Positions 1,432 to 25,700 are shown, counted from the stretch's first letter. The stretch: DNA of 64,000 nucleotides from Octopus sinensis (GCF_006345805.1 NC_043002.1:28706001-28770000); one strand, 5' to 3'. Notes: a model not told the origin generated them from the sequence alone. Program-made: numbers and translations.

Positions 1432-3740
1432 TTAGGATGGAAAAATTTCGACAAATACAGAAATTAGCACAGGAACAAAAATAAAGATCTGTCTCACAAC
1501 TTTAGACATGGAAAAACCTAATATACATCATGTGGGACCGCTTCTATTATGTTATCAAGAAGTAAGATCGAAAAGTAAATCAATGCATAGTAACGTTGAT
1601 AAAAGCCAATAGTGTTTTCTCAAATCTTAATTTGAATTGATTATAAAACTTTACTTGCCAAAATTAAACTGTTTCGAATTTAGCTTCGTGACAAAGCCTA
1701 TCCGCCAATGAGATGCAATAAATAAATAAATAACTATAAATATCTTACGTCCACAAGTTAAAAGGGAATAGTAGTGGAAGTGCAGATCGCAATTGTGTTT
1801 CTTCTTAATAGCACATTGCTCATATGCGCGTATTCGTCTGAAATATACGAAAAACGAACATCATTGTACAAAAGTAAATAACTATATATGTTTGACCAAT
1901 TTTGTCAGAGTCTGTACCAATTTAAAATATCTCGTAGCATTTACAGTCTTTAACATCTGATATCAAATTGCCACCATGTCTAATGTTTGTATTTCAGGGA
2001 TTAGTAAAATATTTCCTCATCAAATAGGAAATATGTTTTAAAAGGTGTTTACTTACCCTTGGCTCTGTCTTGTAATGCAAAGATTTTGAAAAATACTCGC
2101 TAAATTCGCTTAGGGAATTTGACTGAAATTATGTTTTAAGTTTCATAATTAGACCTCAGTAACAAAACAATTATTTTCAATTCGTAATTTTAAATAAAAA
2201 CTTATGAAGTATACGTATTTCGAGATGATAAAATATTACTACAAAATTTCTGAAGTATTAAATTGTATTTTTTAAAAGCTGATGCGAATCTTTAAGAAAT
2301 AATGTCCTAATCGCACGTTTGGGAATTTGAGCTTTGTTGGGAATTATCTATATCTATGTGTCACAATTTAGTTTAACTAATATTGTCGTACCATTTCTGA
2401 TCGATGTATTTAGCATTAGTCAGTTACTGATTCCTTTTGAATCTAGTACATTCCAAGAAAATATTTCTTGGTTTGCCAATGTAACAAATATTAGTATTTA
2501 ATACTTGGTGATACCAGTGTTTAATTTATTATATAAATTATCATATAATTTATCATATGTATGAAAACGAAAGGTATAATAATTAGACTTGTCAGAGGAG
2601 TAAAAATAGTATACTCACTTGCAATATTCCTTATCTGGTGATCGTACCGGAAAATCTATTTCGACTAGGGGACAATATTTTTGGAATATCTCCATGCAGC
2701 CACCTCTCACTGAAAAAGGTAAAATTTAATTTTTTTATTTCGTTACTCTTTAAGATTATTCAGAACTATTGTCTGTGACAGTTGATGGAAATAATTCAGG
2801 TATATTTCAAGATAAAACTTTATTAATGATTCAAGATTAATAAAATCATCTTACTAGGGCAATCAATTTCGAGGGCCCTTTTAAATGATTCGAGGCAATG
2901 TTCGTCTTTCAATGTTTCAGCACATTTTTCAAGTGCAGCAAGGCGCCTGGTCGGTGAAAATAAACTGGTAAATATTATTTCAATATTAAGAAGAAAACAA
3001 AAGAAAATTATTCTTAAGTTTGGCGATATTTCGGATTTTCGAGTTAAAAATAAATTATGCACCTGTTTAAAATATCTAGCAATAAAATTAATTATTTACA
3101 TTGTGAGGTCAAATTTCTCTTATGTGTAATTCTCCTTGCACACTTCAATTATTTCTAGTCGGAGGTAGGAGTTATATATAACAATCTGTTACCCAGCTCC
3201 ACATTCATATACTAGCGTACATGGTACAAATCAGCTTTATATTTTGTAATATTTTAAAATTGCGTTTAAATCTGAATGCGATTTAAATGTTCCTTCCTGA
3301 GATTGCTGTATCTATTACCAATCAGGTACAGTACCCTAGTGAACTACTTTATTCCAGAAAATTACTTTTGATATAAGAAATATAGATTTCAAATATTGGC
3401 ACAAAACCGACAAGTTCGAGAAAGAGCTGAAGTCGATTCCATCAGCCCTAGTGCCCAACGGGTATTTATTTTATTGACCCCAACAAAATGAATGGCAAAG
3501 CTGATGTCAGCAGAATTTGTATTCTGAACGTAAAGATGGAGGAGATACCGCAAAGCAATTTGCCCGGCGTGCTAACGATTCTGCCAGTACCCCGCTTTAG
3601 TGATGATAGAAATAATAGGAATAAGTATATATTTACGTACGCGCAGTTGTTCTTATCTGGGTAATTAAATGGGTATTTCTTCCTGACTTCATGACATTTT
3701 GACCAGTATTTTACTTGGCAATTAACTGAATCAAAATGTC
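1432..3740 (-). CDS. 6-Cys-domain cluster unit 2, two domains, possible hydrophobic C-terminal tail
   Basis: Exons 3740-3641, 2946-2855, 2709-2619, 1837-1749 (GT-AG, phases 1/2/1/2/1) plus candidate last exon 1517-1432: GHFDSVNCQVKYWSKCHEVRKKYPFNYPDKNNCARLAALEKCAETLKDEHCLESFKRALEIDCPMRGGCMEIFQKYCPLVEIDFPVRSPDKEYCKRIRAYEQCAIKKKHNCDLHFHYYSLLTCG-(RFSMSKVVRQIFIFVPVLISVFVEIFPS*). Start exon not found; last exon less certain. Confidence 0.88.
3386..3598 (-). mobile_element. tRNA-derived SINE
   Basis: Same family motifs (tttattgacccc, gcgtgctaacgattctgccag); lies in the first A-B intron of unit 2. Confidence 0.85.
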
Positions 3741-6639: not shown

Positions 6640-6760
6640 AAAGAACATTCACTACATAGTAAGAAGTTTGGTTCTCAGTCACATGCTTCAGGCTAAGTGT
6701 CCGACCGAAATCTTGTGAGTGGATTTGGTAGACGGAAACTGATAAAAGGCCGTCGTGTAC

Positions 6761-6856
<96 letters not shown>

Positions 6857-6873
6857 CATACATATATATATAC

Positions 6874-6969
<96 letters not shown>

Positions 6970-7215
6970 TATATACATGCATGAATGTGTGTATGTATGT
7001 GTGTTTGTGTGTATGTATGATTTTATGTCTGTGTTTGTCATCCACCATCACTTGACAACTAGTGTTGGTGTAGTTACGTCCTCGGAACGTAGCAGTTCGA
7101 CACAAGAGACGATACGGTAAATACTAGGTTTTAAAAGAGGTACTGGCGTCGATTTGCTCGACTAAAGATTTTCAAGGCGTTGACCCAATCATCGCCACAG
7201 ACTAATAACTAAAAC
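6640..7215. repeat. Abundant SINE-like interspersed repeat with internal (TA)n/(TATG)n array
   Basis: Contains ggatttggtagacggaaactg and gactaaaacaaataaaaga segments shared with 57340-57700. Confidence 0.7.
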
Positions 7216-7227
7216 AAATAAAAGAAT

Positions 7228-7622
7228 CTGTTCTACTCTAGGCAAAAAGGTCGAAATTTTGGGGGAGAGTCCAGTCGATTAGATCGTCGCAAATACGCAA
7301 CTCGTGCTTAATTTACCGACCCCGAAAGGATGAAAAGCAGAGTCGACCTCGGCTGAATTTGAACTCAGAACGTAATGACAGACGAAATACCTATTTCTTT
7401 ACTACCCACAAGGGGCTAAACACAGAGGGGACAAACAAGGACAGACAAACGGATTAAGTCGATTACATCGACCCAGTGCGTAACTGGTACTTAATTTATC
7501 GACCCCGAAAGGATGAACGGCAAAGTCGACCTCGGCAGAATTTGAACTCAGAACGTAACGGCAGGCGAAATACCGCTAAGCATTTCGCCCGGCGTGCTAA
7601 CGTTTCTGCCAGCTCGCCGCCT
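7228..7622 (-). mobile_element. Two tandem or nested tRNA-derived SINE copies
   Basis: Core cgaccccgaaaggatgaa...gtcgacctcggc...gaatttgaactcagaacgtaa occurs twice (about 7315-7380 and 7500-7560). Confidence 0.9.
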
Positions 7623-7792
7623 TAGATGAGTAAAAGATTAACGCATAAATCTGTGAGCCAGAAGGGAGAGAAAGAGAGAGAGAGAGAGTGAGAGAGAGAG
7701 ACAGAGTGAGAGAGAGAGACAGAGCTAGACAGGGGAAATGTAGACACAAACAGAAATAGGAAAAATGAGATCTGGCGCACATTCTCAACCGA

Positions 7793-10162
7793 TCAAACAC
7801 CTAGTACAGAGCATATGGCAGTGGCTCTATGACTTCAGCTGGAATTGAGTGCTGAATGCAAATCAATGCGTACCAACATTGCTAAAGTTCAACAATTCTT
7901 TAAATATTAATGGATTTTAACGTAAAAAGCAACTTGACAAATGTAATTGTGTTGGTAATTTATTGCTTCTATGCAGCCCTGAACGAAGTAAGATCGATTA
8001 AATGGATTAAAAAAATTTACCTTCATAACAATTGACGAGAGAAATTTGGTGGAAGTGCGCTGTGCACTTGTGTTTCTTCAGAGTGGCACATTTTTCATAT
8101 ATGAGTATGCGTCTGTAATATAACTTATATGGGAACCTCATTGCTTAAGAGACATGAATCATTTAACTTCTGAAATCAAATTGCCCCGTTTTTATAATGT
8201 TCATATATCTGGGATTGCTAAGATATATCCTAATGAATACAGTAAACAGATTTCAATATCTGATTTGTAATCCAGAGGTTCTCAAGTAATGAAAATAATG
8301 TTTATAAATATACTAGCGAAGTGAGCATGGAAAATTCTAAAGAAATTATGTTTCTTGATTTATAATTTGAAGAAAGATACGAAAAATTTATTTACTAATC
8401 ATATTTACAAACAGCAAATTGGTTAATAATAGTATTTTTGATATGATAAATTTAACGCGTTTTCTGAAGCCGTAGAATACATATTTTAAAAATCTAACAC
8501 GATTTGCGCAGAAACCATAGCTTTAGTCGCACATTCGTGGACTTGTGCATATACTAGAAATATACAGTGCATTCTTTGACCTGCTAAAACATGTTTCAAG
8601 TGACATTGATGTCGATATGTGACATTCTTAGATCGATGTAGTTAGCACTAATCAGTTGCTGTTTCCAATTGAAACTAGTGCACTGCAAGTAAGCATTTCT
8701 TGACTTCTACCCATATAACAAATATTCATTTCAAATTTTGGAACAAGACTAGCAGTTTTAGGGGACGGGGTCGACTTCATCGGCTGGTATTCGATTGATA
8801 CTCAATTTATTGGCCGCGAAAGATGAAAGACAGAATCAACCTCGATGGAATTCGAACACGAAACATAATGACGGACGAAATGTGGTTACGCATTTTTGCT
8901 CAGCAATGTAACGATTCTGCTCCCTCGCCGCATTAACCACTAATACAAACATTAGTAATTAATAGTTGATTGTATAATTAAAGATATAAACGGGTAACTA
9001 TTAGATGTAGTAACAATAGTAAGAGGAGTAAAAGCAACATATATACTTGCAGAAATCCTTATCTGGTGAATGTACTGGAAATTCTTCTTCGGCTTGGCGA
9101 CAATATGATTTGAAATACTCTATGCAATCGTCTTTCTCTGAAAAAAATATACAAATTTCATATTTTATTTGTTTTCGCTATAACTTCTGGACAGTTTGAT
9201 GAAATATTAGAGGAGTAGATGAATTAACATTTAATTCCGGTCTTAATCCGTGTCATAATTAGTAATTTATATTAGGCGTTTCAATGATGACAAGGATAAT
9301 ATTTTGATAATAATACAAATCTAATAATGTAATCTTACCAGGGCAAATATTTCTGAAGAAATCTTGGAATGCTTCAAAGCAACGTTCGTCTTGGATGTCG
9401 TCAGCACACTTTTGATATTCGATAAGGCGCCTGATGTTGAAAATAAATCGATAAATATTATTTTGAAATTTAAATAAACTCCGAAAACAAAACTTAATCA
9501 TAAATTTTGAATCTGAGGGTTGATAAAAAAAATATGTACCAGTTTCATATCATCTTTATCTACATTCTGAGATCAATATACTGCTTTGTTAAAGTATCCT
9601 TTCATACTTCCGGGATTTACGAAATTATTCGTATTCAGAGGCAGGAGTTATATAAGACAGTATGTTTCATATATCTATACTGGTTCATTTCGGAAAAATC
9701 ATCTTTCTATTTATTAATCAACTAAACGTGTATTTAAATCTGAGTTTAGCTCGATATATCTAGTGCCAATCTGATAAAGTAGCTTTGTGAACTGCTCATT
9801 TCCCAACGAGTATTTCTCGTCTTGTACCATGCGACATTATACCGTTCATTCACAAAGCTTCTGCTTAATATATTGGGTTGCAAAGTATTAGTCACTCGAG
9901 GCTACTTAAAAGACACTTCCTAATGTGTTCGTGGAACTAAATCTGAAGCCACGTGACTGTCAAGCGGCATTCAAGACCACGCAGCTGTTGCATTATACAC
10001 ATACTAAAACTTTATGTATTAGATGTAGTAATGAGAGAAATAGCATTAATAAATATATGTATACGTACTGGCAAAGCTTAACATCAGGATATGTAAATGG
10101 GTATTTCGTCTTAGCTGAAGTGCATATTGATCTGTACGTGCTTTCGCAATCTTGGGCTTTTC
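7793..10162 (-). CDS. 6-Cys-domain cluster unit 3, two domains
   Basis: Exons 10162-10069, 9430-9339, 9137-9047, 8112-8021, candidate last exon starting at 7800 (GV*): GKAQDCESTYRSICTSAKTKYPFTYPDVKLCQRLIEYQKCADDIQDERCFEAFQDFFRNICPEKDDCIEYFKSYCRQAEEEFPVHSPDKDFCKRILIYEKCATLKKHKCTAHFHQISLVNCYE(GV*). Canonical splice sites, no stops in the four domain exons. Confidence 0.9.
8727..8932 (-). mobile_element. tRNA-derived SINE in the second A-B intron of unit 3
   Basis: Family motifs; same insertion position as the SINEs in units 4 and 5. Confidence 0.8.
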
Positions 10163-11151
10163 CTGTTGCAAAAAATTGATATTTTTTGTCTTTAGTTCTT
10201 AAATATTATTACTAATAAAGACATGATTGGGTGTAAGTGAATCCTACATGCACTGTGCATTCTAATTATCGTCTCTTTGCGTAAGAGTGGTGCATTTTTT
10301 GAAAAATTGTTTGGTAATTATCTTGTATATAGGTGTGTATAACACCATCACTCTCCTAATATCTTCCAAAAACATTCTAAGCATATTTTTTCAATAAAAT
10401 GCATTAACCAATCAACGTTAAAATATTTTAGTGTTCTAGATGTCTAAATTTATTTCACTTAATAAACAATATTTAATCTCTAAATGCGAGTTTACGGTGA
10501 TACACTCATTAAATGTCATCTCAGGCACTTTTTAAACACTTTATGCGAGACTCTGGTGACACTTCACGCTGTATTCTAAATATGGAAGTGTTAGTGTATA
10601 TAGAGAACTACAACATTATGGTTTAAAAAAAATTAAATAATGCGTACACTATTAGAAAATTTTACAGCAGTTGCAAAAGAAAATATGTACACTCTATGTA
10701 TACTTTTGAACATCAGTTTTACAACAGGCATATTCCTTGAGCATTAAAAGTTTTTTTTGTTTCGTATAATGATTCCCACATTTCCAAACATGCATACGAA
10801 ATCCAATTGATGTTTGCATGTAAAGAAGTGTTTCTGATGTTGGTCCGCATGATGCCCTCCTGGTTGCGCTTCTGGTTTAAGAATGGAACGTAAGCATGTA
10901 AAGTAGGAGGGGAGTTAAATATCTTAATATCCTATATTGTTAACGCTTTAATTATAGATCATTTTGAATATATAAATGTGTGTATATATATAGATCGCTA
11001 GCCACTACGCATTCTTTATTTTCTCTCCTTGTTACTTTCTGTGGAAGCGCGTAGGCTCGAAACGTTAAAGACTTTCACTTCCCGAGCGTTATACTAATAC
11101 ATCTATTTGTTGTCTACACCACCTGTCTTCGTCTTTTTTTGTAAATTTTCC

Positions 11152-11198
<47 letters not shown>

Positions 11199-11206
11199 CA
11201 TATTTT

Positions 11207-12012
11207 ATTGGCCAAAATATGTGTTCGTATTTGTCGTTTTAGTAATCGTTTAAGTAGCTAAGTTCACTCTGTCCGTTTCTGTTGATGCTAACCTTCAAGC
11301 ACTCTTGTAAGTAGCTAATTTCACAATGACGTTTGGGCATGCACACCCATTAGATACTTGACACTGTACTGTAATTTGGTGCGAACTTGGGATGAGAGAG
11401 TTTGTATTTTGTGTGATTTGCATCACCCTCAAAATAGAGAATCTAAACGAACATCATCGACACTTATGCGCTGTGTAAGGAAAGAAGGTTTTTACGAAAT
11501 GTTTTTACCAGAAATCCTTTTCAAAATGTCAATCAAGGTTTCCCAACTGAGATTAACAGCGACACCAACTACCGTTATATGACTAGGATGACCGCAGATA
11601 TGTTCCCCAAATATCGAAATCAAGTGCCCTAAACCATCTGTAACAACATGGGTACGTCATCAAACTAAATGTTTGGATCTCACAATTGAATGTAATTAAC
11701 CATGCCCATCAAATTTTGATCTGAGTTTCGTTGCAGAAACGTGAAGAAAGCCATCGTTTTAATGTTTTGAAGAGAATGGTGAAAATCGGTCCTCAATGAC
11801 AATATGAAACATGAAGCCCATGCAGCAAAATTCTCAAGATAAGCTCCAAACCAGGACTTTATTCGAATAAGATTTTGTTACTGACTCGCGCCCGTTTTTA
11901 TGAAAACTGAAGTGTGTTATTGGACGAAAAGAGGTGAAAAACAATGACTATTTCACATTCCGAACGATTCACTTCCGGACGTTTCAGAAAGTGCATATGT
12001 GGGTATACCTAA
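11207..12012 (+). mobile_element. Degenerate mariner-like DNA transposon
   Basis: Starts tattggccaaaat after a (TA)n run; fragmentary transposase-like translation with many stops. Confidence 0.5.
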
Positions 12013-12019
12013 TATAATA

Positions 12020-13150
12020 GGATTATGAGAAACTTTCGATACTCCACGATCACAGATTAGCCCTTCTGCTGATATCTAATCTCAGTCTGTTTGCATATGT
12101 CCACTACTTCCTGATAAGACAATCGAAACTAGTCAATGAATCTGCGTGGTACCCAGCTTGGTCGTCACTGAAAGAAGGATATTTCTTCCATTTGCCCCCT
12201 CAAGTAGCACTGAGAATTACCATGAGATGATTACGAACTCAGAAAAAATATATTGAAGAAAAACAAGCAGATTTCAGTAAAGGTAGCAGAAGTTTTGATA
12301 ACTTCAGTACAGATGTTCTACTCTGTTTTCTCAGTGTGAAGCACCACCAACAAGAACACAAAATCTAGCATGTCATACTCTTTAGAAAGGAGCTTGATGT
12401 TTGGAATGATGATTTACGGGAAATTACTTCATAAGATTTAATAGTATAAAGAATTTGACTCGTTCTAGCAACTTATTTGTATCAAGATACCAAGTAAGTG
12501 CGAGATCTAAGCTATATTAGAAATGATATGACACGTCCTAAAACTGATACAGAAGATAAACGATACCCTTAAATATAATGGAGGTCCACTCAGCATCGGA
12601 GAAGTGTATATTACAAAACTAAGAAATGATGGGCTTCAATTGATGAACTGGTAATGAACACGTATAAACTGGTTGACTTAAAGGTACTGTTGTATGTTCT
12701 ACAATATGTTTGAACAAAAACCGTACAAAATATCATCAATACAGTTTCCATTATTTTCGTCAGAACAAGAACAGATATCCATGTCCAATGTGAAACACTA
12801 GACGAAAATGGTATTCAAATAATTAGAGAAAAATGTCGATAAAATATCAATGCAAAACTTCCTTGCATGGACAGCACAGAACACAAGTGCAGTAAACACA
12901 GGTGGGCCAATATTGTAGGAGAGAAACATCTCTATAAAAATAATATTTGGAGTACGGACACCATACGGCATAGGTGCCTTCCAGCTTTCATGCATGTGAA
13001 ATATAGATCCTTACAATATAGATACAGAGAAAAATACAGGCATTCAAAATGAGAGGGCAACTCTAAGGGATTTCGTACATAGAGAAGTTCACCAAGGAAT
13101 TTCGTTCATAGAGGCAGTCATCTAACTGACATCGAAGCACTCAATATCAT
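12020..13150 (+). mobile_element. Degenerate LINE (RTE-like) reverse transcriptase remnant
   Basis: Fragments such as EKQADFSKGSRS, ...RTRTDIHVQCETLDENG and YSWRETS resemble the RT C-terminal half; heavily interrupted. Confidence 0.5.
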
Positions 13151-13511
13151 ATGGCCGAAGAAAAGAAATATGATATGCATACTTATCAAGATGGAGTAAC
13201 TTAGAAAAAACATTTTTTAGGAAAATTGTAAAGTGTAGATATTAAAAACAAAAAAGAAATTTGATGCACATCTCCAACAGAATGAAACATCGTACACAGT
13301 ATATGGTACCGCTACTGTGTCTTCATCAAGAAATGAGAATAGAAGACAAATCCATGCTTACTAACATTGGTAACGGTTAATACTCTTTTAGCAAACATTA
13401 AGTGGAATTGAATGTAATATGTATCTTGACAAATGTAACTTTTGTTGATGATTACTGCATCGATGCACCCTACCGCAAATAATGTCAATTAAATGAATTA
13501 AACAATTTTAC

Positions 13512-15980
13512 CTTTATTACATTCCATGAGATTAATTTGATGGAAGTACCCAGTGCACACGTGCTTCCTCTCAGAGGCACAGCTTTCATATACGGGTATG
13601 CGTCTGTAATGTACATATATGGGAAGATCACATCACATGAGAGAAAAATCCTTAATGAGTTTGGCAATATTTTGAATAATCGACGTAGTGTGATAAAAAT
13701 TCACAGGAGTGACTGAGATCGAATTGTTACTTTTTATAATGTCTTTATATCCTGGATTGCTGAAATATTTCCTAATCGACATATTAAATAGATCTTAACA
13801 TCTGATTTCTAATCGAATGCCATTCTAGTAATCGGTTTTTAAATATACTAGCGAATTCCGCATAGAAAATTCTTTGGAAAAAATGTTTCATGATTAATAA
13901 TTTGAAATAAGGTAAGAAACATTCATTCACTAATGATATTCACAAATAACAAAATTATTAATAACAATATTTTTCATAGGATGTATCATTATAACGAGTT
14001 TTCTAAAGCATTAAAATACACATTTTAAAACAACGCGTATTGTTCAGAATCCACAGTTCTAATCACACATTCGTGGACTTGTGTCTATACTGGAAATAAC
14101 TTAGGTATTCTTTGATTTGCTAAAAGTTGTTTCTAGTGATAATGACGTCAATATGCCACATTCTTAGTGCGATGTAGTTAGCACTAATGAATTACTGTTT
14201 CGTATTGAAACGAGTGCACTCCAAATGAGCATTTCTTGATTTGCAACAATATAACAAACATTCATTTCAATTTTGGGTGGAGTAGGGGTTCTGAGCCGAT
14301 TGCATCGACCCCAGTGTTGAACTTTTACCTAATTCATCGGCCACGAAAAAATGAAAGTCAAAGTCGATCTCCATGGAATTTGAACAAACATGAAGACGTA
14401 CGAAATGCCACTAGGAATTTTACCAATCACAATAACGATTTTTCTCGCTCGCCGCCTTACTAAGTATTACAAATATTAATAATTAATAGTTGATTGTTAG
14501 TTGATAGTATAATCAAATATATAAACATGTAACTATTAGTTGTAGTGATAATCAGAGGAACAAAAATAACACATGTACTTGCAGAAATCCATATCTGGTG
14601 AATGCACGGGGAAATCTTTTTCCGCTTTAGGACAATAAGATTTGAATAACTCCATGCAGCTGTCTTTTCCTGAAAAATATACAAATTTCATATTATATTT
14701 TATGTTTTTACAACTTCTGGACAGTTTGATGAAATATCAGATGAGAAGATAAATTAATATTTAATTCCGGCCTTAATTTGTTATTTATATTACGTACTTT
14801 GACAACAAAAATAATCATTTCCTCATAATAGACAATTAGTAAAATAATCTTACCAGGGCAAACATATTTGTAGGTTTTTACAAAGGATTTGTAGCAATAG
14901 TCGTCCTTGTATGTGTCAGCACACTTCTTAAATACGATAAGGCGCCTGATGTTGAAAATAAATCGTTAAGGATAATTTTTGAATTATAAAACTCAAAATT
15001 TTATTCATAATTTGGCAATGCTTTGTATCTGCGGATTGATAAAAATATGGACAAGTTTAATATAATCAATATCTACATTTTGAGATTAATATACTGCTTT
15101 GTGAAACTATACTTTCATACTTCCGAGAATTACAAAATTATTCATATTCAGAGGTAGGAGCTATATAAAACAGTCTGCTGTCTTGCCTCATATATCTATA
15201 CTTGTCCATTTCAGAGAAATCATCTTTGCATTTATTAATCAGCTAAACGTGTATTTAAATGTGGTTAACATGCAGCATTCTAGCTCGGTATATGTAGTGC
15301 CAATCCGATAAAGTACCTTTGTGAACTACACGTTTCGCAACGAGTATTTCTAGTCTTGTACCAATATTAGAGTCGTTGTCAATTAACAGCAGGTTATATC
15401 GTTATATTGTTTTTGTTTATTATTTTTATTATTTCAGTCGTTGAACTTCAGCCATAATGGGGCATTCGATCGGAGAGCTTTAAATGATCATATTTCACCC
15501 CAATTACTTCATCTGAATTTAGTAGCTAGTCTTGCTTTTGGGGAGTCGCTAAGTTACAGGGATGTAAACAAACAAGCTGTGAATGATAAATACATGTTCA
15601 CACTTACATATAAGCATTCAGACACGACACATGTACACTAACTCATGTGACCTTACGCCGTTCTTGTCTAAAGTTTTTACTCAATATATTCAGCTATATA
15701 TATATTGGCCCGTGGCTAATGTAGAAAACACTTGTGCATGGAACTAAATCCGATATCACGTGGCTGCCAAAGGATTTTCTTAACCACACAGGTATTGATT
15801 TATACAAATAATAAAAAAAATTACGTGTTACATGAAATAGTGACAGAGTATTTGTAAATAATACATATAAATTTACGAACGAGCACTGGTACGTATCCGG
15901 GTACAGTAGTGGGTACTCTCTCATGGCTTCATGACATATTTGCCTGTACTTTCCTTCGCATTCACTGATTTTATCTGCAG
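13512..15980 (-). CDS. 6-Cys-domain cluster unit 4, two domains
   Basis: Exons 15980-15881, 14945-14854, 14669-14579, 13603-13512: xADKISECEGKYRQICHEAMREYPLLYPDTYQCSRLIVFKKCADTYKDDYCYKSFVKTYKYVCPGKDSCMELFKSYCPKAEKDFPVHSPDMDFCKRIPVYESCASERKHVCTGYFHQINLMECNK. First donor is weak (gttcgt); last exon uncertain. Confidence 0.88.
14244..14458 (-). mobile_element. tRNA-derived SINE in the second A-B intron of unit 4
   Basis: Family motifs (gcatcgaccccagtg, ggaatttgaac, ctcgccgcc); same position as the 8727 and 26243 copies. Confidence 0.8.
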
Positions 15981-17198
15981 CTATAAAGTTCATATATTTC
16001 ATGTCTTTAGTTCTTAAATATTCTGACCATAAAGACGAAACTGGATTTTTTCGGTTGTCATAGTTTTTAATATTTAAAATAAAATGAAAATTATCAAGTT
16101 TGGTAGATTGATGTTATTTTTCACAGTGATACCAAATTTACGATCCCTTTATTCCCAGAGATTTAGTAAAACGTTACAGAGGTTCAAAGTTTGATGATTT
16201 TTAGTCAAATTAACAAACAAAAATCGGAAGCCGGCATTTTTTACGTTATAGATGCTTGCTCATAATATGACATACGGAAATAACACAGACACAAAATAAT
16301 ACTGCATGTCAAAACTTGTGTAATTGTTGTCCTTGATTCAGTGGCAGCAGGGCAAACGAGAGCTTTGCATGTTACTATGGAAACATGCATCAATGGGATA
16401 GTTATTGTCACGCGTATATTGGTGGGCTTTCATTAGCTAAAGTTACAAACATTTCAAATTTCAGATGTTGTAACTTTTTATTTATTAATTCATGACAAAA
16501 ACTATTTTAAATTTTCATATTTAGCATAATATGCCAAATCGGTATAAACAAATTTGAAAACAATACGAAATCTGTACTAGCAACCGAAAAAGATCCACAA
16601 AATAAAAAAAATATATATCGACATTTAATTTTTATGCACTTAATTCTAATTTTTATCAAAGTCACTCGAAAAGGAAGTTGAGTTTGGAGTGGATGTAATA
16701 AAATGTTTTGATGTTGGGCATAACAATCTGTTGGACTGGTGTTGTAATCTTAAAAACAGGATAAAAATAACGTTTATAATTATAAAAATATTGTTTATTC
16801 TCTGGGTTTTGGTGTTATGTGTATTTGGAAATGTCAATAATTGCAATGGTAGTTTTAGGTCTCCTGTGAGTATATATGTTTTCCATAATTCTGTAATGAT
16901 CTGTTTGTGTTTTACATTTTCTGTATTGGTTGTTGGCTTACGTTTCAATGCAGAAATAGAACGTAACTTTTAGAATATGCTTGAATAGTGCATATCCTGT
17001 AATTTCTGATGTTTTCTTTGTAAAATGGCAGTGCCTCGTTTGAAAAAGTGCTTGATTAGGTATGTGGTATGTAGATCTCAATAACGCTAAAATTCTTCTA
17101 TTATTTTTCAAGATTCTGAGTATCACTTTAGGTGAAAATTATTTGCCAGTTAGTGTCAAAATTTATATCCACACACACACACACACATGTATATATGT

Positions 17199-17869: not shown

Positions 17870-20800
17870 AGGTAGCCACTGACAAACCGGAAATACGGTT
17901 AGGCATCTTAGAAAGACAAGAGGACTGCTGGGAAAGACGAGCGGACAATAGGAAAGACTATCGACACCAGGAAAGACTGGCGGAGGCTGCGGACTTACAA
18001 TCCTCGCCTTTGTAATATGTTGTAACAGTTACGAATGATAATGACATCCCCACGATAGACCGAGAGGTGGGAGTCGAGAATCAATCAAACCCAGTTAACA
18101 CGGGAATGACCTTGGATATGAGTACGGCTATTCATTCGAACAGCGAATGAAGTGTAAGCAACTTTGGATGCAAGCTGTGCTGTAGAATCTTTGCAACTGT
18201 GAGAGGTTTGAAGATACATCATGGAAAGACATGTGAGAAGAAGACAGAGCAATGTGGATCAACTGAGCGTAAAACACGTGGCAAATAATCCCCGGACTCA
18301 AACCACAGCGGATCGATAAGTGCTACAGCAAAGACTTCTTCCCGTCAGGAAACTGCAGGTTATGAAACTGGTGCATCAGATAGTACTCGGAGGAAACCGA
18401 GGATTTTGTGGCCTGCTGCTAATGAGAAAGGGAAATATAAAGAGTTTGAAAACAAGTTATGTCGAGCTCTTTATAAAATGACAGTGAAGAAACTGGGAAA
18501 ATTAACAAGCTCAATTTACGATATAGGTAATGAATTATTTGGAGTGAAAGAGAATATCCGATTAGCGAAAGGAAAGTGTGGACCAAGTAGAAGGGTCAGA
18601 AAAATGAAACAGTTGGGGAAGGAAAATACCAGCCTAAGAAAGCGATAGAAGTGTGCTACATAAGAAGAGAAACCTGGCCTCGCGCTGCTGTATGACGATA
18701 TGAATAGGAAATATCGTTATATGCAACCACATATCTGCCGATATGAGCCTCAGAAGGAGAGTAAAAAGACTCGGGGGCAGTTTCTGAAGGACTCGTATGG
18801 GTTTACTAAGAAGCTATTCACTGAACCGAAGAGTGGCTCTTTATCGTGCATGAAAGACGAATTGGAAGCTCATATCAAAGAAACCTATAGCGATCCTCAC
18901 CGTAACCAGCCACTGCCACCTCTACATGGGCTAAATCATCTCTCAGAAACTGATATCGAATTCCAAATTGGGGATACCAGGGAGAGAGAGGTGGATGATT
19001 TCGATTTCGTAAGGAAAGCTGGAGCAATGAGTACCCCAGGAGGTGATAGCATCTCGTATAAAGTTTATAAATATTGCAATCGTCTGCGAAAGAAGCTCTT
19101 TGTCCTGCTCCGACAGCTGTGGCGCGAAAGACTGTAGTAGAGGATTGGTGTAAAACAGAAGGCAAATACCTGCCGAAGGAGTCTAATGCAGAGACTATAA
19201 AACAGTTTAGGCCGATATCCTTATTGAATTTGGAGGGCAAAATCTTTATGGGAATTATTTCGAGGAGAACAGTGACATATTTACAGAATAACGGATATGT
19301 TGATGAATCTATTCAAAAGGCCGGAATCCCTGGGATCCCTAGATGCGTTGAACACTGTTTTTCGATTTGGAAAGCGATCCAGGATGCCAAACAGAACAAG
19401 AGAAGTCTGAAAGTGGTATGGCTTGACCTAGCTAATGCATATGACTCAGTGCCACACGAATTACTGATGAGAGCCATGGACCACTTCCACATTCCAGACA
19501 AAGTGATCAAAATAAGGATGTATTATAACAGTTTCGAAAGGAGGTTTACGGCTGGAGATTTTTACAACAGATTGGCACCGATTGAAGATTGGCATTGCTG
19601 CTGGCTGTACAATATCTGTCACAAGGTTAATCTTAGTCATGGAGATGATTTTGAAAGCTGTGGATTTTTCAGAACAAATCGCTCATGTACAATCGCTTAA
19701 GAAAGCCTTTATGGGTGACGTGACACTTCTAGCTACAGATAAACAAATCATGCAGAATGCCCACTTGAGATTAGAACTTGTGAGGTGATCAAGGATGTGG
19801 TTTAGAGCAAAAGAGTCGCGTAGTCTGACGTTTGTTAAGGGAGTGCAGAAAGAATTAAGTTTCGAATAGCTGAAGAAAGCAGTCAAAAACTTGGGGCGAG
19901 TACACGCAGCAACATTGTCAGATAGGAGTCGGGGGATGGAAATTATGAGACAAGCCGAGGCTGGATTATCAGCGATTGATAACCAGGTATATATACAATT
20001 TAGTGCTTGCAGTTCGGTTTGCATCCGCGACTTTCGTGGCCACATTTAATATACGAGGTAGCCTTGTCACGAGTTCAGATCATTGAACAAAAATGTAATG
20101 TGTTCATTAGAAAGTGGCTAGGTCTACCTCGGATGTTGAACAGTTTAGCTCTTTATTGTAAAAGTGGTTCATTGCAGTTACTACTAGTTAATAGTCGAAA
20201 TATATGAACTGGGGAAGATACGGACGGTGATGAAGCTGAGAGAATCGAAGGAAAAGGAAATGGAAATCAGGTGAAAACGGCCAGGAAGTGGAAAGCAAAA
20301 GCAGAGACTGATGGCATCTTGTCTTCTCTTACGCACAGAGATATGGTAGGAGCAACGCAAAACCACCGGAAAGGACTTGGTTTTGGCGCAGATCAGTTCA
20401 GACCGTTTGCGAGTATGATGCGGAGCGAACGCAGATCTGTTGTTAACAACAGCGTCAAAACGAGGGAAGCAGAGAGAAGAGAGCTTCATTTGATCCGATG
20501 TATTAAACAAAGACAGATGACGAGCTGGGAAGAACTTGTTGTTGAGACGAAAATAAGTTGGAATTAGATATGAAAGTGGACCACTTCTCGGCTAAGTTTT
20601 CTGATTCGTTCATCCTATGATGTTTTGCCGTCACCTACAAATCTAGTAAGATGGAACGTCTCAGAGAATAAAATATGCAAATGCGGAAAGGTCAACTGTT
20701 CATTAACATTGAACAGGTATCCATGGAGACATAACCTGGTATCTTCAATGCTATAAAGAACCAAATTGACCTCAATAACAGTGAGTAAAAAAACCGTTGA

Positions 20801-20890
20801 ATGTACCAATTAGAAATTTCCTTACATTCATGTGCTCAGGTCAGCGGATCCGTTTCAAGAAAAAGAACATGAAACTTCCTATGATCTAGC
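17870..20890 (+). mobile_element. Non-LTR retrotransposon, RLE group (HERO-like), inactivated
   Basis: N-terminal zinc finger CKLCCRIFATVRGLKIHHGKTC (~18165-18240), WPAANEK, RT motifs FRPISLLNLEGKIF, WLDLANAYDSVPH, GIAAGCTIS, AFMGDVTL and QFGLHPRLSWP, spread over several frames with stops. Confidence 0.82.
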
Positions 20891-20899
20891 AAGCAGGGC

Positions 20900-21828
20900 C
20901 TCATATCAGTGGAATATGAGTTCGATGAAGAGCAATTAAACAACCTTTTGCACGAAAATTCTCGTCAAACGACAAGGAAACTGGCAGAGTAAATGAAATG
21001 CTCCCATTGCTTTAGAGAAGCATCTTCATTCGATTGGAAAGGTTCAGAAGTATGGAGTATGGGTTCCGCACGCTTAAAGGGTAAACAAGAAAAATGAACG
21101 GGCCACAATCTCTGCTGGTTTACTTGCTCGTCACCGCTCAACTCATGGACACAAGCAACGATTTCTTTACCGAATCGTTACTGGTGAGGAAAAATGGTGC
21201 CTGTACATCAATATGAAGCAGCGAAGGAATGACTTAGTTCCAGTAATCAAGCAACACCACGCGTGAAACAAGATCTTCATCCACGTAAAACCATGTTGTG
21301 CGTATGGTGGGACTGGGAAGGGATTATCCATTACGAATTGCTTGAACAGAACCAAACGGTCAACACGGAACTCTTTGTTCAGCAGATGGAACGTCTCAAC
21401 ACGGCTATTCAAGAGAAAAGACCTAATCGACAGCATGGAGTTCTTCTGCTGTACGACAACGCCCACCCTCATATCACCAATATGACCAAGGAAGGCATTC
21501 AAACGCATGGCTGGGAAGTGTTGCTACACCCGCTGTACACTCCTGATATGGAACCAACGGATTTCCACCTCTTTCGATCTCTTTCAAATACTATGCGCGG
21601 AGATTCGTTCAATACCGATGCAGAATTGAGAGCTTGGTTGGATCGATTTTTCTAGTTGAAATGGGGTGATTTCTACCAATGAGATATTGAAAATCTAGTT
21701 GGACGTTGGGAAGAAATTGTAAACAACAATGGTGAATACAGTATTGATTAATTAGTTGTTATTTTTTATTAAACCTTTTAAAAAATTTAAATAAAAGCCT
21801 CCACGAGAACTTATTTGGCAATCCAATA
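20900..21828 (+). mobile_element. mariner (DD34D) transposon, 5'-truncated
   Basis: IVTGEEKW, MLCVWWDWEGIIHYELL, LLYDNAHPH, HPLYTPDMEPTDFHLF; terminal repeat ...gaacttatttggcaatccaaTA ends at 21828. Confidence 0.92.
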
Positions 21829-22473
21829 TTTTGATTTACCAGATTGTAGCGTGGTTTGACACCTAGACGTCAAAAGTAAAAATGAAAAAAACGATATTTT
21901 TCTCTCTCCCCATAAATCTAAATTTAGGTTAGCGTAGCCGTTATCTGTGCGTTGAATTCGAGATTTTAGGTCATCTTCCTTCAACGGTGATGGTTGGCTC
22001 CATGTTTTATGTAAACTGTTGCAATGTTTATAGTCTCTTCTATCGGAAGGTAAATAATTTTTTATGGACATTAGTAAGGGCTAATATTTCGAAACGTAAT
22101 TTTTATTGAATGCAAAATCAAGGTTTAGCGGGATACGAAATATAATTTGATTTCAGAATTGGTTGAATCACCAAGAATATAAAATAACTAAAAATATTCT
22201 TACTTTTACATATTATGTGATAGACAGTGACGAAGTGCCTTTCGCATTCGTGTGCTACCTCATGAGCACACATATAATATGTTAACAGGCGACTGGAATA
22301 TAAAAACAAAAGAAAATCATTTCAGATAAAAGAATACAATTTCGTAATACTTTAAATTATTGATGTACTGAAGTTAAAACTCACTATAGATCACAACCAG
22401 GTATAACCTTAAAATGTTATATATATATATATGTATATATGTATGTATATATGTATATATGTATGTATATATG

Positions 22474-22506
<33 letters not shown>

Positions 22507-22517
22507 GTATATATGTA

Positions 22518-22553
<36 letters not shown>

Positions 22554-22569
22554 TATATATGTATATATG

Positions 22570-22610
<41 letters not shown>

Positions 22611-22657
22611 GCATGCATATATATATACATATGTAAGTATATATGTATGCATGAATG

Positions 22658-22712
<55 letters not shown>

Positions 22713-22735
22713 GCATAAACATACATGCATATATA

Positions 22736-22796
<61 letters not shown>

Positions 22797-25700
22797 TATA
22801 TATATATACTACGGACTTTTTTCAATTGCCGTCTATCGCATCCACTAACAAAGCTTCGGTTGACATAGTACTATAGTAGACAACACTTGACCATGGTGCC
22901 ACGGAGTGGAACTGAACTCTGAACAATGTTTCGAGAACTAAATTCCTTACTACACAACCGTACCTACTGACTTTACTTTAAATTTTAACATGTTTGAATT
23001 AAAACATTTGGAAAATATGAGGTATATAGCAGAAAATTCTGTATCTCTGTCGCATATGTGTGTTTCGATTCCCACCGTTAATCAAACGTATATTATTGTA
23101 TCTGGAGTAGATATAGGAAGTTCGATAGAAGAAAGTGTATCATAGGAAGTGTCAGTATTGAAAGGAGTGTACTCATTTACAGATGAATGAAACTGAAACT
23201 CTTTCAGCCGCAATAATTTAAAACTTTATTTTTATTTCTTATCCTGAACATTTCCAAGTTTAATTAATCTTTTTATGCCCACATTTTCTCTACTAGTATA
23301 CACTTTTTAGATAAAGATTAAACATTACTTGGGGTTTTCTATAGAATTCAATTACATTTAGAAAATGAAAACTAGCGTGCATCATTCAAGAACCATTGGA
23401 CTAACTGCACATTTTAGGTCAAAATATATTGTCTTAAAATCGATACAGTTGACACCGATTAATATATGTTCCTTATTTTAATCTAGCATATTTCAAGTAA
23501 GCATTTCTTGGGTTGTGCCGATGTAAGAAATATTGTTCTTAAATATTTGAATATACCAATGTAAAATTGAATAAACACGTAAATTTTAGATGTAGTAATA
23601 ATAGTAAGAGTAGTAAGAAAACATATGTACTTGCAAAAATTTGAATCTGGAATACGCTTAGGATAATTTCGTTCCGCATTGGGACACAAATTTTGGAACT
23701 CGTTTATGCATATGTCATTACCTGCAATACATACAAATTTGACATATCCTTTGATTTTCTAATCAAAACTTTTGAATTATTAGATGCCCCAACAGAAATT
23801 AAATCGACTAATTTTGGTCTTACCCAGCATTAGCGGTTATAGGCTGTATTACATGGTTTAATCATGACAAAGATGTTTTCTGAAATGAATTTTGTGATTT
23901 TGTTCATGGTTCTTCGTGGATATTTTTCGGTTAGATTTTAAAGAAAATACTTATTATAGTACTCATTCCAAGTTAACTGTTGCGATCTGCAATATATAGT
24001 TTGTGGCTAAAAATGGATAAATTATTTACATAATCTTGCGTACATGGGGAATTATGTGTTTTGAGGTGAGCTATTTCAATTAGTCAAACAAGTGCCTGAA
24101 ATAATTATTATTATGCCCGTACTGGTAAACTGGAGGAATCATTAGCAGTATTCCATCTGTCTTTACGTTCTAATTTCAAATTCCGCTGTGGTCAACTTTA
24201 CCTTTCCTCCCTTCGGAGTCAGTAACGTAAAGTATCAATTGAGCATTGTTGTCAATGTGAGCAACTTCAAGTATCGGTTGAGCACTGGAGTCAATGTGAT
24301 CAACTATATCCATTCCCCGAAATTTCAGGCTTTCTGTTGATAACGTAACTTATAAAATGTAATATGTTTCGAATTTAGTTTGCAAATACACCGTTTCTGT
24401 CAATATGTGTGAATAAAGTATATCTTACGAGGACAATTATCAATAGAGAGTCCATTGTAGAAATCCCAGCACTTCTCATTGATATTTTTAGCACAACTTT
24501 TGTATTTCTCAAGGCGTCTGCAAAATCAAGATAGATATGAGAAATTCACTTCAGAAAAAGGTAAGTTATAATATAATGGAGAATATTTTCGATTATTAAC
24601 ATAATGAGATTAAATTACGCCAGAGTTTATAAACTCTGTTATCAGCTTCAAATATCTTGTAATATTTATGTGCGCTGCAAGGCGGAAAATTGACGGAATC
24701 GCTAGCATATCGGTCAAATATCGTAGTGCTGTTTGGACTTGCTCATTACATTCTGAGTTCAAATTACGCCTCAGTGGTCTTTGTTTTTCAGCTTTTCGAG
24801 GTCGATTAAATAAGAACTAGCTGAGCGCTGGTGTCGATGTAACTGGCTCTCCCCACTCTCCAGAAATTCCTTGCCTTGTGCTAAATGTTTGAAACCAAGC
24901 TTTTATCTTCTTTACATACTGATATCACGCTACCATTGTGTATTTTATATTTCCAGGGTTGTAAAAATCAAATGAAGAATTAAATTTTACAAACTGATTT
25001 CTAACATCTGGCAATAAACTTTAAATATTGCTGCATTTCATGTAGTAAATTGTAACAAAATGATGTTTTACACTGAATCATTTGAACAAAATAAAATAAA
25101 GGTTTAATAATAAACAACAAATTCTAAATAGCATGTGTCTTGTGATGATCAAACATTACTATAGGTTTCCTAAAGCATGACATATTTTTAAAGATTGACA
25201 TGTTTCGGTCTCTCGATCTGTCCTAAGTGCACATTTGTGAACTTGTGCCATATTTAGTATTACTTATATACAAGGTGCGGTGAATAAATAGTCGTCTAAA
25301 TTACGCAAAAATGAAAGTAACACTGACTTCTCATTTTAGCAGATATATTTACCAAAATTACATAAAAATATCTTGAAATACAAAAGAGTAAATTTATTCA
25401 ATAAAATCGTCTCCAAACGACTTCGGAATCTCCTGCAACTATCTGGATGGTCCCCTTGTTTAAGTTGGTGAATGCTGCCGTAATCCTTGCTTTCAGTTCA
25501 TCATTGGTGTTACAAAGAGTTTTGTTGGTCTCTCGTTCAACTGTACCCCACACATAATCAAAGGAGTTGCAGTCTGGGGAGTTAGGTGGCCAAAGTTTAG
25601 GGGAGATGTGGTCACAGAAATTGTCATTACTGGGTTCTGCTAGTTTGGCATGTTGCAGACTCCTATTGCCAGGCATAGGACTTCCAGCAGTCCCCCGCTT

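Follow-up and report, generated by a model that had tools for sequence, protein, structure and literature searches.

In a 64,000-nucleotide stretch of the Octopus sinensis genome (GCF_006345805.1 NC_043002.1:28706001-28770000; hereafter the window, with positions counted from its first letter), the minus strand of 608-44271 forms one gene of at least 44 kb and at least 28 exons. Its predicted product has a signal peptide and a half-module followed by at least 13 tandem modules of ~60 residues, and would be secreted. The module scaffold is strongly constrained, and the module surfaces evolve at or above the neutral rate. The reading that we prefer, with a probability of roughly 0.62, joins these points: a single secreted-array gene, grown by duplication of units, combines a constrained cysteine (Cys) scaffold with surface columns at a nonsynonymous-to-synonymous rate ratio (dN/dS, omega) of ~2, its modules being likely binding or recognition modules, and it carries a separately constrained intronic element. 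An initial annotation of this DNA had proposed that diversifying selection acts on the residues between the Cys of a fixed scaffold, arguing from an exon pair that diverged more than a neighbouring intron block. That proposal is partly supported, by codon site models, which place ~35–40% of codons at omega ~2, but not by its own exon/intron evidence.

Exons were located with regular expressions and a tblastn scan, using the pattern R-L-x5-C-x8-C-x11-C for the first half of a module and C-x7-C-…YP…PD…C for the second. The search returned 13 first-half and 13 second-half exons, which alternate from 39887 down to 608 on the minus strand. First-half exons start in phase 2 and end in phase 1, and second-half exons do the reverse; all domain exons have AG/GT sites with consistent phases, and the 26 exons splice into 798 codons with 0 stops. 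Upstream, the ATG exon (44235-44271) joins in frame to the exon at 40376-40469, which holds the rest of the signal peptide and the half-module. As D13 ends on a donor site and a B-type copy of the intronic element (see below) occupies 1-65, the gene runs past the left window edge, and from this copy another B-type domain (D14) can be predicted to the left of coordinate 1. Two annotated proteins, O. sinensis XP_036359395 (P0004, 147 aa) and O. vulgaris CAI9724703 (P0005, 205 aa), are exact pieces of the gene, which is thus annotated in these two species only as fragments of its 13 domains. In both models the start codon ('MSKSVAV') is intronic and shortly precedes the D5 second-half exon (start and exon together within 26575-26690, minus), and the P0005 model skips from D5ex2 to D10 to D13ex1 and then runs into an intron. 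The exons, in order of transcription, are as follows (L001 is the O. bimaculoides locus of LOC128248050; P0001 is a family protein).

44235-44271, minus: exon 1, with the ATG, the start of the signal peptide (MKGSMYICLLIV + 1 nt) and a GTAAGT donor; read from the sequence, with a collinear blastn match to L001 exon 1 (the O. bimaculoides exon 1 is likewise 37 nt)
40376-40469, minus: exon 2, signal peptide end and N-terminal ex2-type half-module (…GIALANYCNKRYTARCPHIVKDNFELYFGYC); tblastn against the P0001 N-terminus, E=5e-6; phases link exon 1 and D1 ex1 in frame
39802-39887, minus: D1 first-half exon
36715-36814, minus: D1 second-half exon
35442-35533, minus: D2 first-half exon
33159-33258, minus: D2 second-half exon
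31614-31705, minus: D3 first-half exon, B-type
30818-30908, minus: D3 second-half exon
30011-30099, minus: D4 first-half exon
28146-28245, minus: D4 second-half exon
27208-27299, minus: D5 first-half exon, B-type
26575-26665, minus: D5 second-half exon, exact match to P0004 and P0005
24429-24517, minus: D6 first-half exon, exact match to P0004
23631-23721, minus: D6 second-half exon
22204-22292, minus: D7 first-half exon, A-type, orthologous to O. bimaculoides ObA7
15881-15974, minus: D7 second-half exon, preceded by a 6.2-kb intron with transposon fragments
14854-14945, minus: D8 first-half exon ('exon B1 of unit 4' in the initial annotation)
14579-14669, minus: D8 second-half exon
13512-13603, minus: D9 first-half exon, A-type
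10069-10162, minus: D9 second-half exon
9339-9430, minus: D10 first-half exon ('exon B1 of unit 3' in the initial annotation), exact match to P0005
9047-9137, minus: D10 second-half exon
8021-8112, minus: D11 first-half exon, A-type
3641-3725, minus: D11 second-half exon
2855-2946, minus: D12 first-half exon, B-type
2619-2709, minus: D12 second-half exon
1749-1837, minus: D13 first-half exon, A-type
608-707, minus: D13 second-half exon, ending on a donor site

Each module carries six invariant Cys together with an invariant R, P (in a YP motif) and D (in a PD motif). The six Cys are invariant across 28 aligned modules, an alignment that left out the O. bimaculoides module ObA10, which has lost one. 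When the folding unit was taken in exon order (ex1+ex2), AlphaFold2 (AF2) gave a predicted local distance difference test score (pLDDT) of only 74.4 and a predicted template modelling score (pTM) of 0.55, and this register was replaced by ex2+ex1, for which pLDDT was 94.4 and pTM 0.79, with helices at 3-11, 13-18, 28-41 and 47-58. Small relatives of the protein, as well as both termini of P0001 and P0002, begin with a second-half and finish with a first-half. Together with the model scores, this shared register places the boundaries of the folding unit at phase-1 introns. The unit is modelled as a three-helix, disulfide-locked bundle, composed of a second-half exon and the next first-half exon and split by a phase-2 intron.

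Selection on the modules was evaluated with a Goldman–Yang site-model likelihood written for this analysis (not PAML or HyPhy), applied to 23 domain coding sequences from two species. On the full tree, M0 gave omega 0.72. M2a (log likelihood, lnL, -3760.6), with 41% of sites at omega 2.16, was favoured over M1a (lnL -3780.3; likelihood-ratio test, LRT, 39.4, p=3e-9). M8 (lnL -3753.6), with 35% of sites at omega 1.78, was favoured over M7 (-3762.7; LRT 18.3) and M8a (-3763.0; LRT 18.8), and the p-values for M2a/M1a and M8/M8a lay between 1e-5 and 1e-9. Because the full tree is long (~25 substitutions per codon), the models were refitted to a shallow forest of seven orthologue pairs and two recent clades, which gave LRTs of 29.2 (M2a vs M1a), 19.0 and 19.4 (M8 vs M8a) and omega2 of 2.1–2.4 at ~38% of columns. 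The LRT was 21.5 with F1x4 and 35.2 with F61 codon frequencies. In a parametric bootstrap of 24 simulations under M1a, the largest LRT was 7.4 and one exceeded 5.99. When the domains were split in half, the columns that one half marked as fast had an omega in the held-out half of 1.44 (p=0.058) and 1.58 (p=0.027), and the posteriors of the halves correlated with r=0.53. Our own code supports a class with omega above 1 (M2a, M8); overall omega is ~0.7 (0.68–0.79). At the other end, ~20% of columns (Cys and core residues) have omega ~0.05, indicating strong purifying selection.

Columns with a naive empirical Bayes (NEB) posterior above 0.95 were 19, 24, 27, 31, 41, 44, 52 and 56. On helix 1, columns 37, 41, 44, 48 and 52 form an i, i+4, i+7, i+11, i+15 stripe, and the selected columns 19, 24, 27 and 28 lie on helix 3. 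Invariant or omega0 columns are the Cys, R1, A9, F21, Y53, P54 and D61; along helices 2 and 3, fast columns alternate with invariant or omega0 columns (R1, L2, C8, A9, C17, F21, C29). This helical periodicity suggests that the fast columns lie on solvent-exposed helix faces. Columns 31-32 are in an indel-rich linker, where the signal may be an alignment effect.

Pairwise estimates were mostly below 1. By the Nei–Gojobori method (NG86), whole-domain dN/dS ranged from 0.39 to 1.37 (D8 vs D10, 0.44). The exon pair from which the initial annotation had argued, 9339-9430 vs 14854-14945, gave dN=0.438, dS=0.453 and omega=0.97, the differences being evenly distributed among the codon positions (12, 10, 8), and its partner exon (B_ex2) gave omega=0.19. 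For the concatenated orthologues D1-D8 (485 codons), dN was 0.333, dS 0.493 and omega 0.68; gene-wide, synonymous divergence therefore does not fall below coding divergence.

The whole window protein matches only two O. bimaculoides proteins, LOC128248050 and LOC128248155, with 47–49% identity. The window gene is the orthologue of LOC128248050: L001 is collinear with the window at 65–77% nucleotide identity, introns included, and also has two exons per domain. The orthologues are ~47% identical in protein. L001 holds 10.5 domains, and the window gene carries more modules. In domain trees, W_D1-D8 pair one-to-one with ObA1-8, D7 pairing with ObA7, while the B-type domains D8, D10 and D12 cluster and D9, D11 and D13 group with ObA9. 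This grouping makes the recently duplicated unit B then A, with V1=D8+D9, V2=D10+D11 and V3=D12+D13. The initial annotation had set the register as A+B; D7 is an old paralog of D9, not a recent duplicate. On the exact orthology of D9-D13 to ObA9-10 the two trees disagree, with support of 43–85. In the 3' part of the array, the two-module (four-exon) units lie ~5.5–6.5 kb apart, and V1-V2 introns are 68–80% identical, compared with 44–71% for orthologous introns. The array would have grown by tandem duplication of two-module units, with D8+D9 and D10+D11 as the youngest pair, probably lineage-specific. The second half of ObA10 (L001 59593-59686; KDDCMEIYKR-CPIPVRDIPLDESVMNEEDC) is degenerate, with one scaffold Cys lost; no full module follows ObA10 in the O. 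bimaculoides orthologue, and the loss suggests that modules decay towards the 3' end.

With the units so defined, the comparison of exon with intron could be repeated. The nucleotide and codon counts of the initial annotation were reproduced exactly: 30 of 92 nt differ between 9339-9430 and 14854-14945, both complete minus-strand exons flanked by AG (acceptor) and GTAAGA (donor); 18 of 30 codons are replaced and one change is synonymous only (minus-strand frame); and 12 of 104 nt differ between the intron blocks 9558-9661 and 15071-15174. The protein identities it had put at ~45% and ~63% were measured as 38% (23/60, D7 vs D9) and 55% (33/60, D8 vs D10). Its claim that the exon diverges faster than the intron holds against the chosen block (Fisher p=0.0004), but not against all intron columns (p=0.23). 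Whole homologous introns of V1 and V2 are 68.0%, 79.9% and 75.8% identical and the four exons 67.4%, 79.1%, 75.0% and 60.0% (shuffled controls, 40–52%); pooled identity is 70.6% for exons and 73.4% for introns (p=0.27). Better-conserved introns are not a general pattern either, as exons are equally or better conserved in comparisons with V3 (exons 57–72%, introns 54–62%) and between species (exons 71.3%, alignable introns 44–71%, pooled 55%). In the young units, dS (0.51–0.65, NG86) exceeds intron divergence (0.23–0.42, Jukes–Cantor, JC), although the numbers are small; between species this order is reversed, with introns more diverged than dS. Widespread intronic constraint near exons, some homogenisation or an NG86 bias are possible causes.

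The block used as the yardstick proved to belong to a conserved intronic element of ~100 nt, which precedes the first-half exon of D3, D5, D8, D10, D12 and the predicted D14 by 120–190 nt. Its copies are as follows.

9548-9661, minus: element upstream of D10 ex1, contains 9558-9661
15061-15174, minus: element upstream of D8 ex1, contains 15071-15174
3092-3190, minus: element upstream of D12 ex1
27486-27548, minus: element upstream of D5 ex1, 84% identical to the D10 copy
31824-31944, minus: element upstream of D3 ex1, 73% identical to the D10 copy
1-65, minus: element at the window edge (predicted D14)
L001 52549-52624 and 59125-59220: element upstream of ObA8 and ObA10

The window contains six sense-strand copies, whereas 0.02 are expected. 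In 21 of 21 pairs the element is better kept than the adjacent exon (65–88% vs 49–71% identity), and copies from one species do not group together. The initial annotation had itself named constraint confined to that block as a way in which its argument could fail, and this is what was found. The exon-versus-intron argument fails because its yardstick is a constrained element, and, with the exon pair at omega 0.97, the evidence first put forward does not establish diversifying selection. Each B-type first-half exon is preceded by a sense-strand copy of this intronic element, which is under its own constraint; its most plausible role would be in the splicing of the highly repetitive pre-mRNA. 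Rfam gave no match to the element on 8000-16000, where the only hit was a spurious mir-297 (28.5 bits, threshold 90) in a (TA)n run at 11147-11201. RNAalifold found no conserved pairs among seven copies, which gives no support to a structured RNA. Another conserved block was noticed at the intron start, in the first ~60–90 nt downstream of second-half exons (gtacatatg…cttactactcttactattattactacat…). Examples are 8985-9046, 23571-23630, 30727-30817 and 26480-26569 in the window and 38835-38882, 41544-41602 and 59691-59734 in L001; it is 76–84% conserved among old paralogous units and between species.

Several points weigh against the preferred reading. The split-half tests are only marginal (p=0.058, 0.027), and pairwise dN/dS is mostly below 1 (0.97 for the 9339-9430 pair). 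The exposure of the selected sites rests on helical periodicity, not on model coordinates. The models use NEB rather than Bayes empirical Bayes (BEB) posteriors and one synonymous rate for all sites, and they ignore multi-nucleotide mutations and recombination or gene conversion; each such simplification can inflate omega. They also assume a given column to be in the same selective class across all domains, and the full tree is long, at ~25 substitutions per codon. For the gene itself, the sole annotated models look ab initio, are fragmentary and start at an intronic ATG. The main rival, which we consider rather unlikely, is relaxed constraint alone: apart from the Cys scaffold, the surface would be nearly free (omega about 1), and the class above 1 would be an artefact of misspecification, arising from multi-nucleotide changes, synonymous-rate variation among sites, an AT-rich mutation spectrum or undetected conversion. 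The overall omega of 0.68–0.79, the exon pair at 0.97 with its even spread over codon positions (12, 10, 8), the held-out omega of 1.44–1.58, only marginally above 1, and the far better fit of M7 (omega up to 1) than of M0 all agree with it. It is opposed by LRTs of 19–39 for the omega>1 class, obtained under three codon-frequency models and with deep branches removed, by null simulations at these divergences that reached at most 7.4 in 24, and by the recurrence of the same fast columns in independent data halves (r=0.53). Moreover, the implied dN of the fast columns (~1) would exceed both dS (0.49) and intron divergence (0.37–0.69) between species.

Two further explanations concern the introns and the integrity of the array. 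Gene conversion or unequal crossing-over could keep neighbouring introns alike while exons escape by selection, with no constraint on the introns. Tandem repeats are prone to conversion, and V1-V2 intron divergence (JC 0.23–0.42) is lower than NG86 dS of the same units (0.51–0.65), as homogenisation would have it; even so, we regard this as very unlikely. The element copy W_upD10 is 79% identical to Ob_upD8 of the other species, compared with 76% to W_upD12 and 70% to W_upD5, and Ob_upD8 and Ob_upD10 are 83% identical, no more than expected of related units. The spacing between block and exon is also the same in the second species and in units with exons of ~35% protein identity. Elsewhere, the introns of older units have diverged almost to the level of alignment noise (54–62% vs 45–52%). 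That the array consists of decaying, non-functional exon copies diverging neutrally is hardly credible. Such a pseudogene array would fit the lack of a whole-gene annotation in O. vulgaris and O. sinensis and the missing Cys of ObA10, but it is effectively refuted by the intact frame (0 stops in 798 spliced codons of AT-rich DNA, with 78/78 Cys codons and 52/52 splice sites intact) and by the conservation of the scaffold (the omega ~0.05 class at ~20% of columns, and omega 0.19 for B_ex2).

Under the preferred reading of an intact secreted array with a fixed scaffold and diversifying surfaces, the protein would most likely serve outside the cell as an array of modules for binding or recognition, and a co-evolving partner would drive the change of the module surfaces. 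If the result holds, the gene would be among the fastest-evolving intact octopus genes, with orthologues at ~47% protein identity and introns that can still be aligned, and a concrete case of module-surface diversification in a cephalopod-specific secreted protein of an uncharacterised family. The analysis also corrects the fragmented O. vulgaris and O. sinensis annotation and identifies a conserved intronic element. A methodological lesson follows for tandem-exon arrays, where an intron block that aligns well is likely functional and unfit as a neutral yardstick.

Among 1.84 billion cluster representatives, a search with the family profile recovered 16 proteins, each belonging to O. bimaculoides, O. 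vulgaris or O. sinensis, so that the family was found only in Octopus. Literature searched by locus name, accession and keyword contained no mention of any family member. A second cluster of small family members (P0006, P0009, P0012-P0017) lies on a 55.6-Mb chromosome of O. bimaculoides and an 84-Mb chromosome of O. vulgaris. In these small relatives a signal peptide is followed by one to four modules and, at the C-terminus, by a hydrophobic tail resembling a glycosylphosphatidylinositol (GPI) signal, and several have multiple annotated isoforms.

The window also contains repeats. Inside the 6.2-kb D7 intron, within 18700-21700 (plus strand), are a reverse transcriptase (RVT_1) fragment at 19074-19700 and a mariner-type Transposase_1 at 21263-21655; another RVT_1 fragment lies at 47515-47910. 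These transposon fragments account for the GC-richer stretches at 18–22 kb and 44–48 kb. Repeats of ~170–230 nt resembling short interspersed nuclear elements (SINEs) were found at 7227-7624 (two adjacent copies), 3418-3599, 14294-14460, 8758-8924, 26292-26443 and 998-1159, with up to 94% identity to their counterparts in L001. Those at 14294-14460 and ~8760-8920 occupy homologous positions of V1 and V2, which makes the insertion older than the duplication. Long microsatellites lie at 412-600, 6740-7020, 11150-11200, 22400-22840, 44740-44900 and 45300-45440; the types include (GTA)n directly after the D13 donor, several (TA)n/(TATG)n runs, (GAT)n and (AAT)n.

The closest named domain is the N-terminal domain of the RGM proteins. 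In Pfam, RGM_N (PF06535) reached 20.9 bits over 7 stretches of the window protein, below the gathering cut-off of 24.2; the distant relative P0003 scored 37.9 bits summed over 4 stretches, which passes this cut-off, P0002 scored 10.4 bits and P0001 had no match. RGM_N was matched by 12 of 32 single modules, and no other family recurred. When the family profile was compared with the Protein Data Bank (PDB), the top four hits were RGMB N-domains, with E of 0.17–0.7 (not significant) and only 24 residues aligned. This alignment (D..fCkaLraYagC....k.C) covers 3 of the 6 Cys with the same C-x8-C-x7-C spacing and a CkxLxxYxxC motif, and spans the second-half/first-half exon junction. Neither the 736-aa window protein nor P0003 matched a PDB entry with phmmer. 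Foldseek searches of the PDB with both AF2 models gave no usable neighbour, and no RGM structure for the model with pLDDT 94; membership in RGM_N is therefore unproven, and the modules can be described as weakly similar in sequence to the RGM N-terminal domain. We consider improbable the wider reading that this is an Octopus-restricted, RGM_N-derived family without RGM_C, which has given rise both to giant secreted tandem arrays, in this gene and the neighbouring ones, and to small tail-anchored single-module proteins, with surfaces under diversifying selection and a dedicated intronic element governing splicing, possibly as in-frame cassette choice. If true, it would describe a lineage-specific extracellular recognition system in octopus.

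Like the RGM N-domain, whose structure is known from RGMB complexes such as 4UHZ and 4UI0, the octopus module would be a small, disulfide-rich, helical extracellular domain, and the signal peptide and hydrophobic C-terminal tail of the small relatives recall the RGMs, which are GPI-anchored (PMC10084454). In RGMs, to which the N-terminal domain is confined according to the literature, this domain occurs in one copy, whereas the octopus proteins form tandem arrays of up to 13 or more modules, and Pfam gave no RGM_C match in the window protein (the 3' end of the window gene being outside the window), P0001, P0002, P0003 or P0023. A helical, disulfide-rich, extracellular design is also shared with the GDNF/GAS1 (GFR-alpha-type) domain. 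'GDNF/GAS1 domain-containing protein' is in fact the source name of P0009 (UniRef A0A0L8GPX5). Unlike that domain, the octopus module has six Cys and gives no Pfam GDNF match at E<=1, in P0009 or in any other member.

In the organisation of its introns, the gene has one feature in common with Dscam. Docking/selector intronic elements of the Dscam type direct the choice among tandem exons, and in both systems every exon of a tandem class has a copy of a conserved intronic sequence upstream of it. As the intron phases of the octopus gene alternate between 1 and 2, cassette skipping would keep the frame. In contrast to Dscam, no antisense (docking) copy of the element was found in the window and no conserved RNA pairing is predicted, and mutually exclusive splicing is without support.

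In its mode of evolution, the gene recalls rapidly evolving secreted families built on a Cys scaffold, such as venom peptides, defensin-like immune peptides and gamete-recognition proteins. It shares with them the invariant Cys framework, hypervariable inter-Cys residues, a class of codons with omega above 1 and a copy number changed by tandem duplication. Pfam and PDB revealed no similarity of the window protein to a toxin, immune or gamete-recognition family. It differs from these families in that gene-wide dN/dS is below 1 (~0.7), that introns are not generally better conserved than exons, and that the product is a large multi-module protein rather than a short processed peptide.

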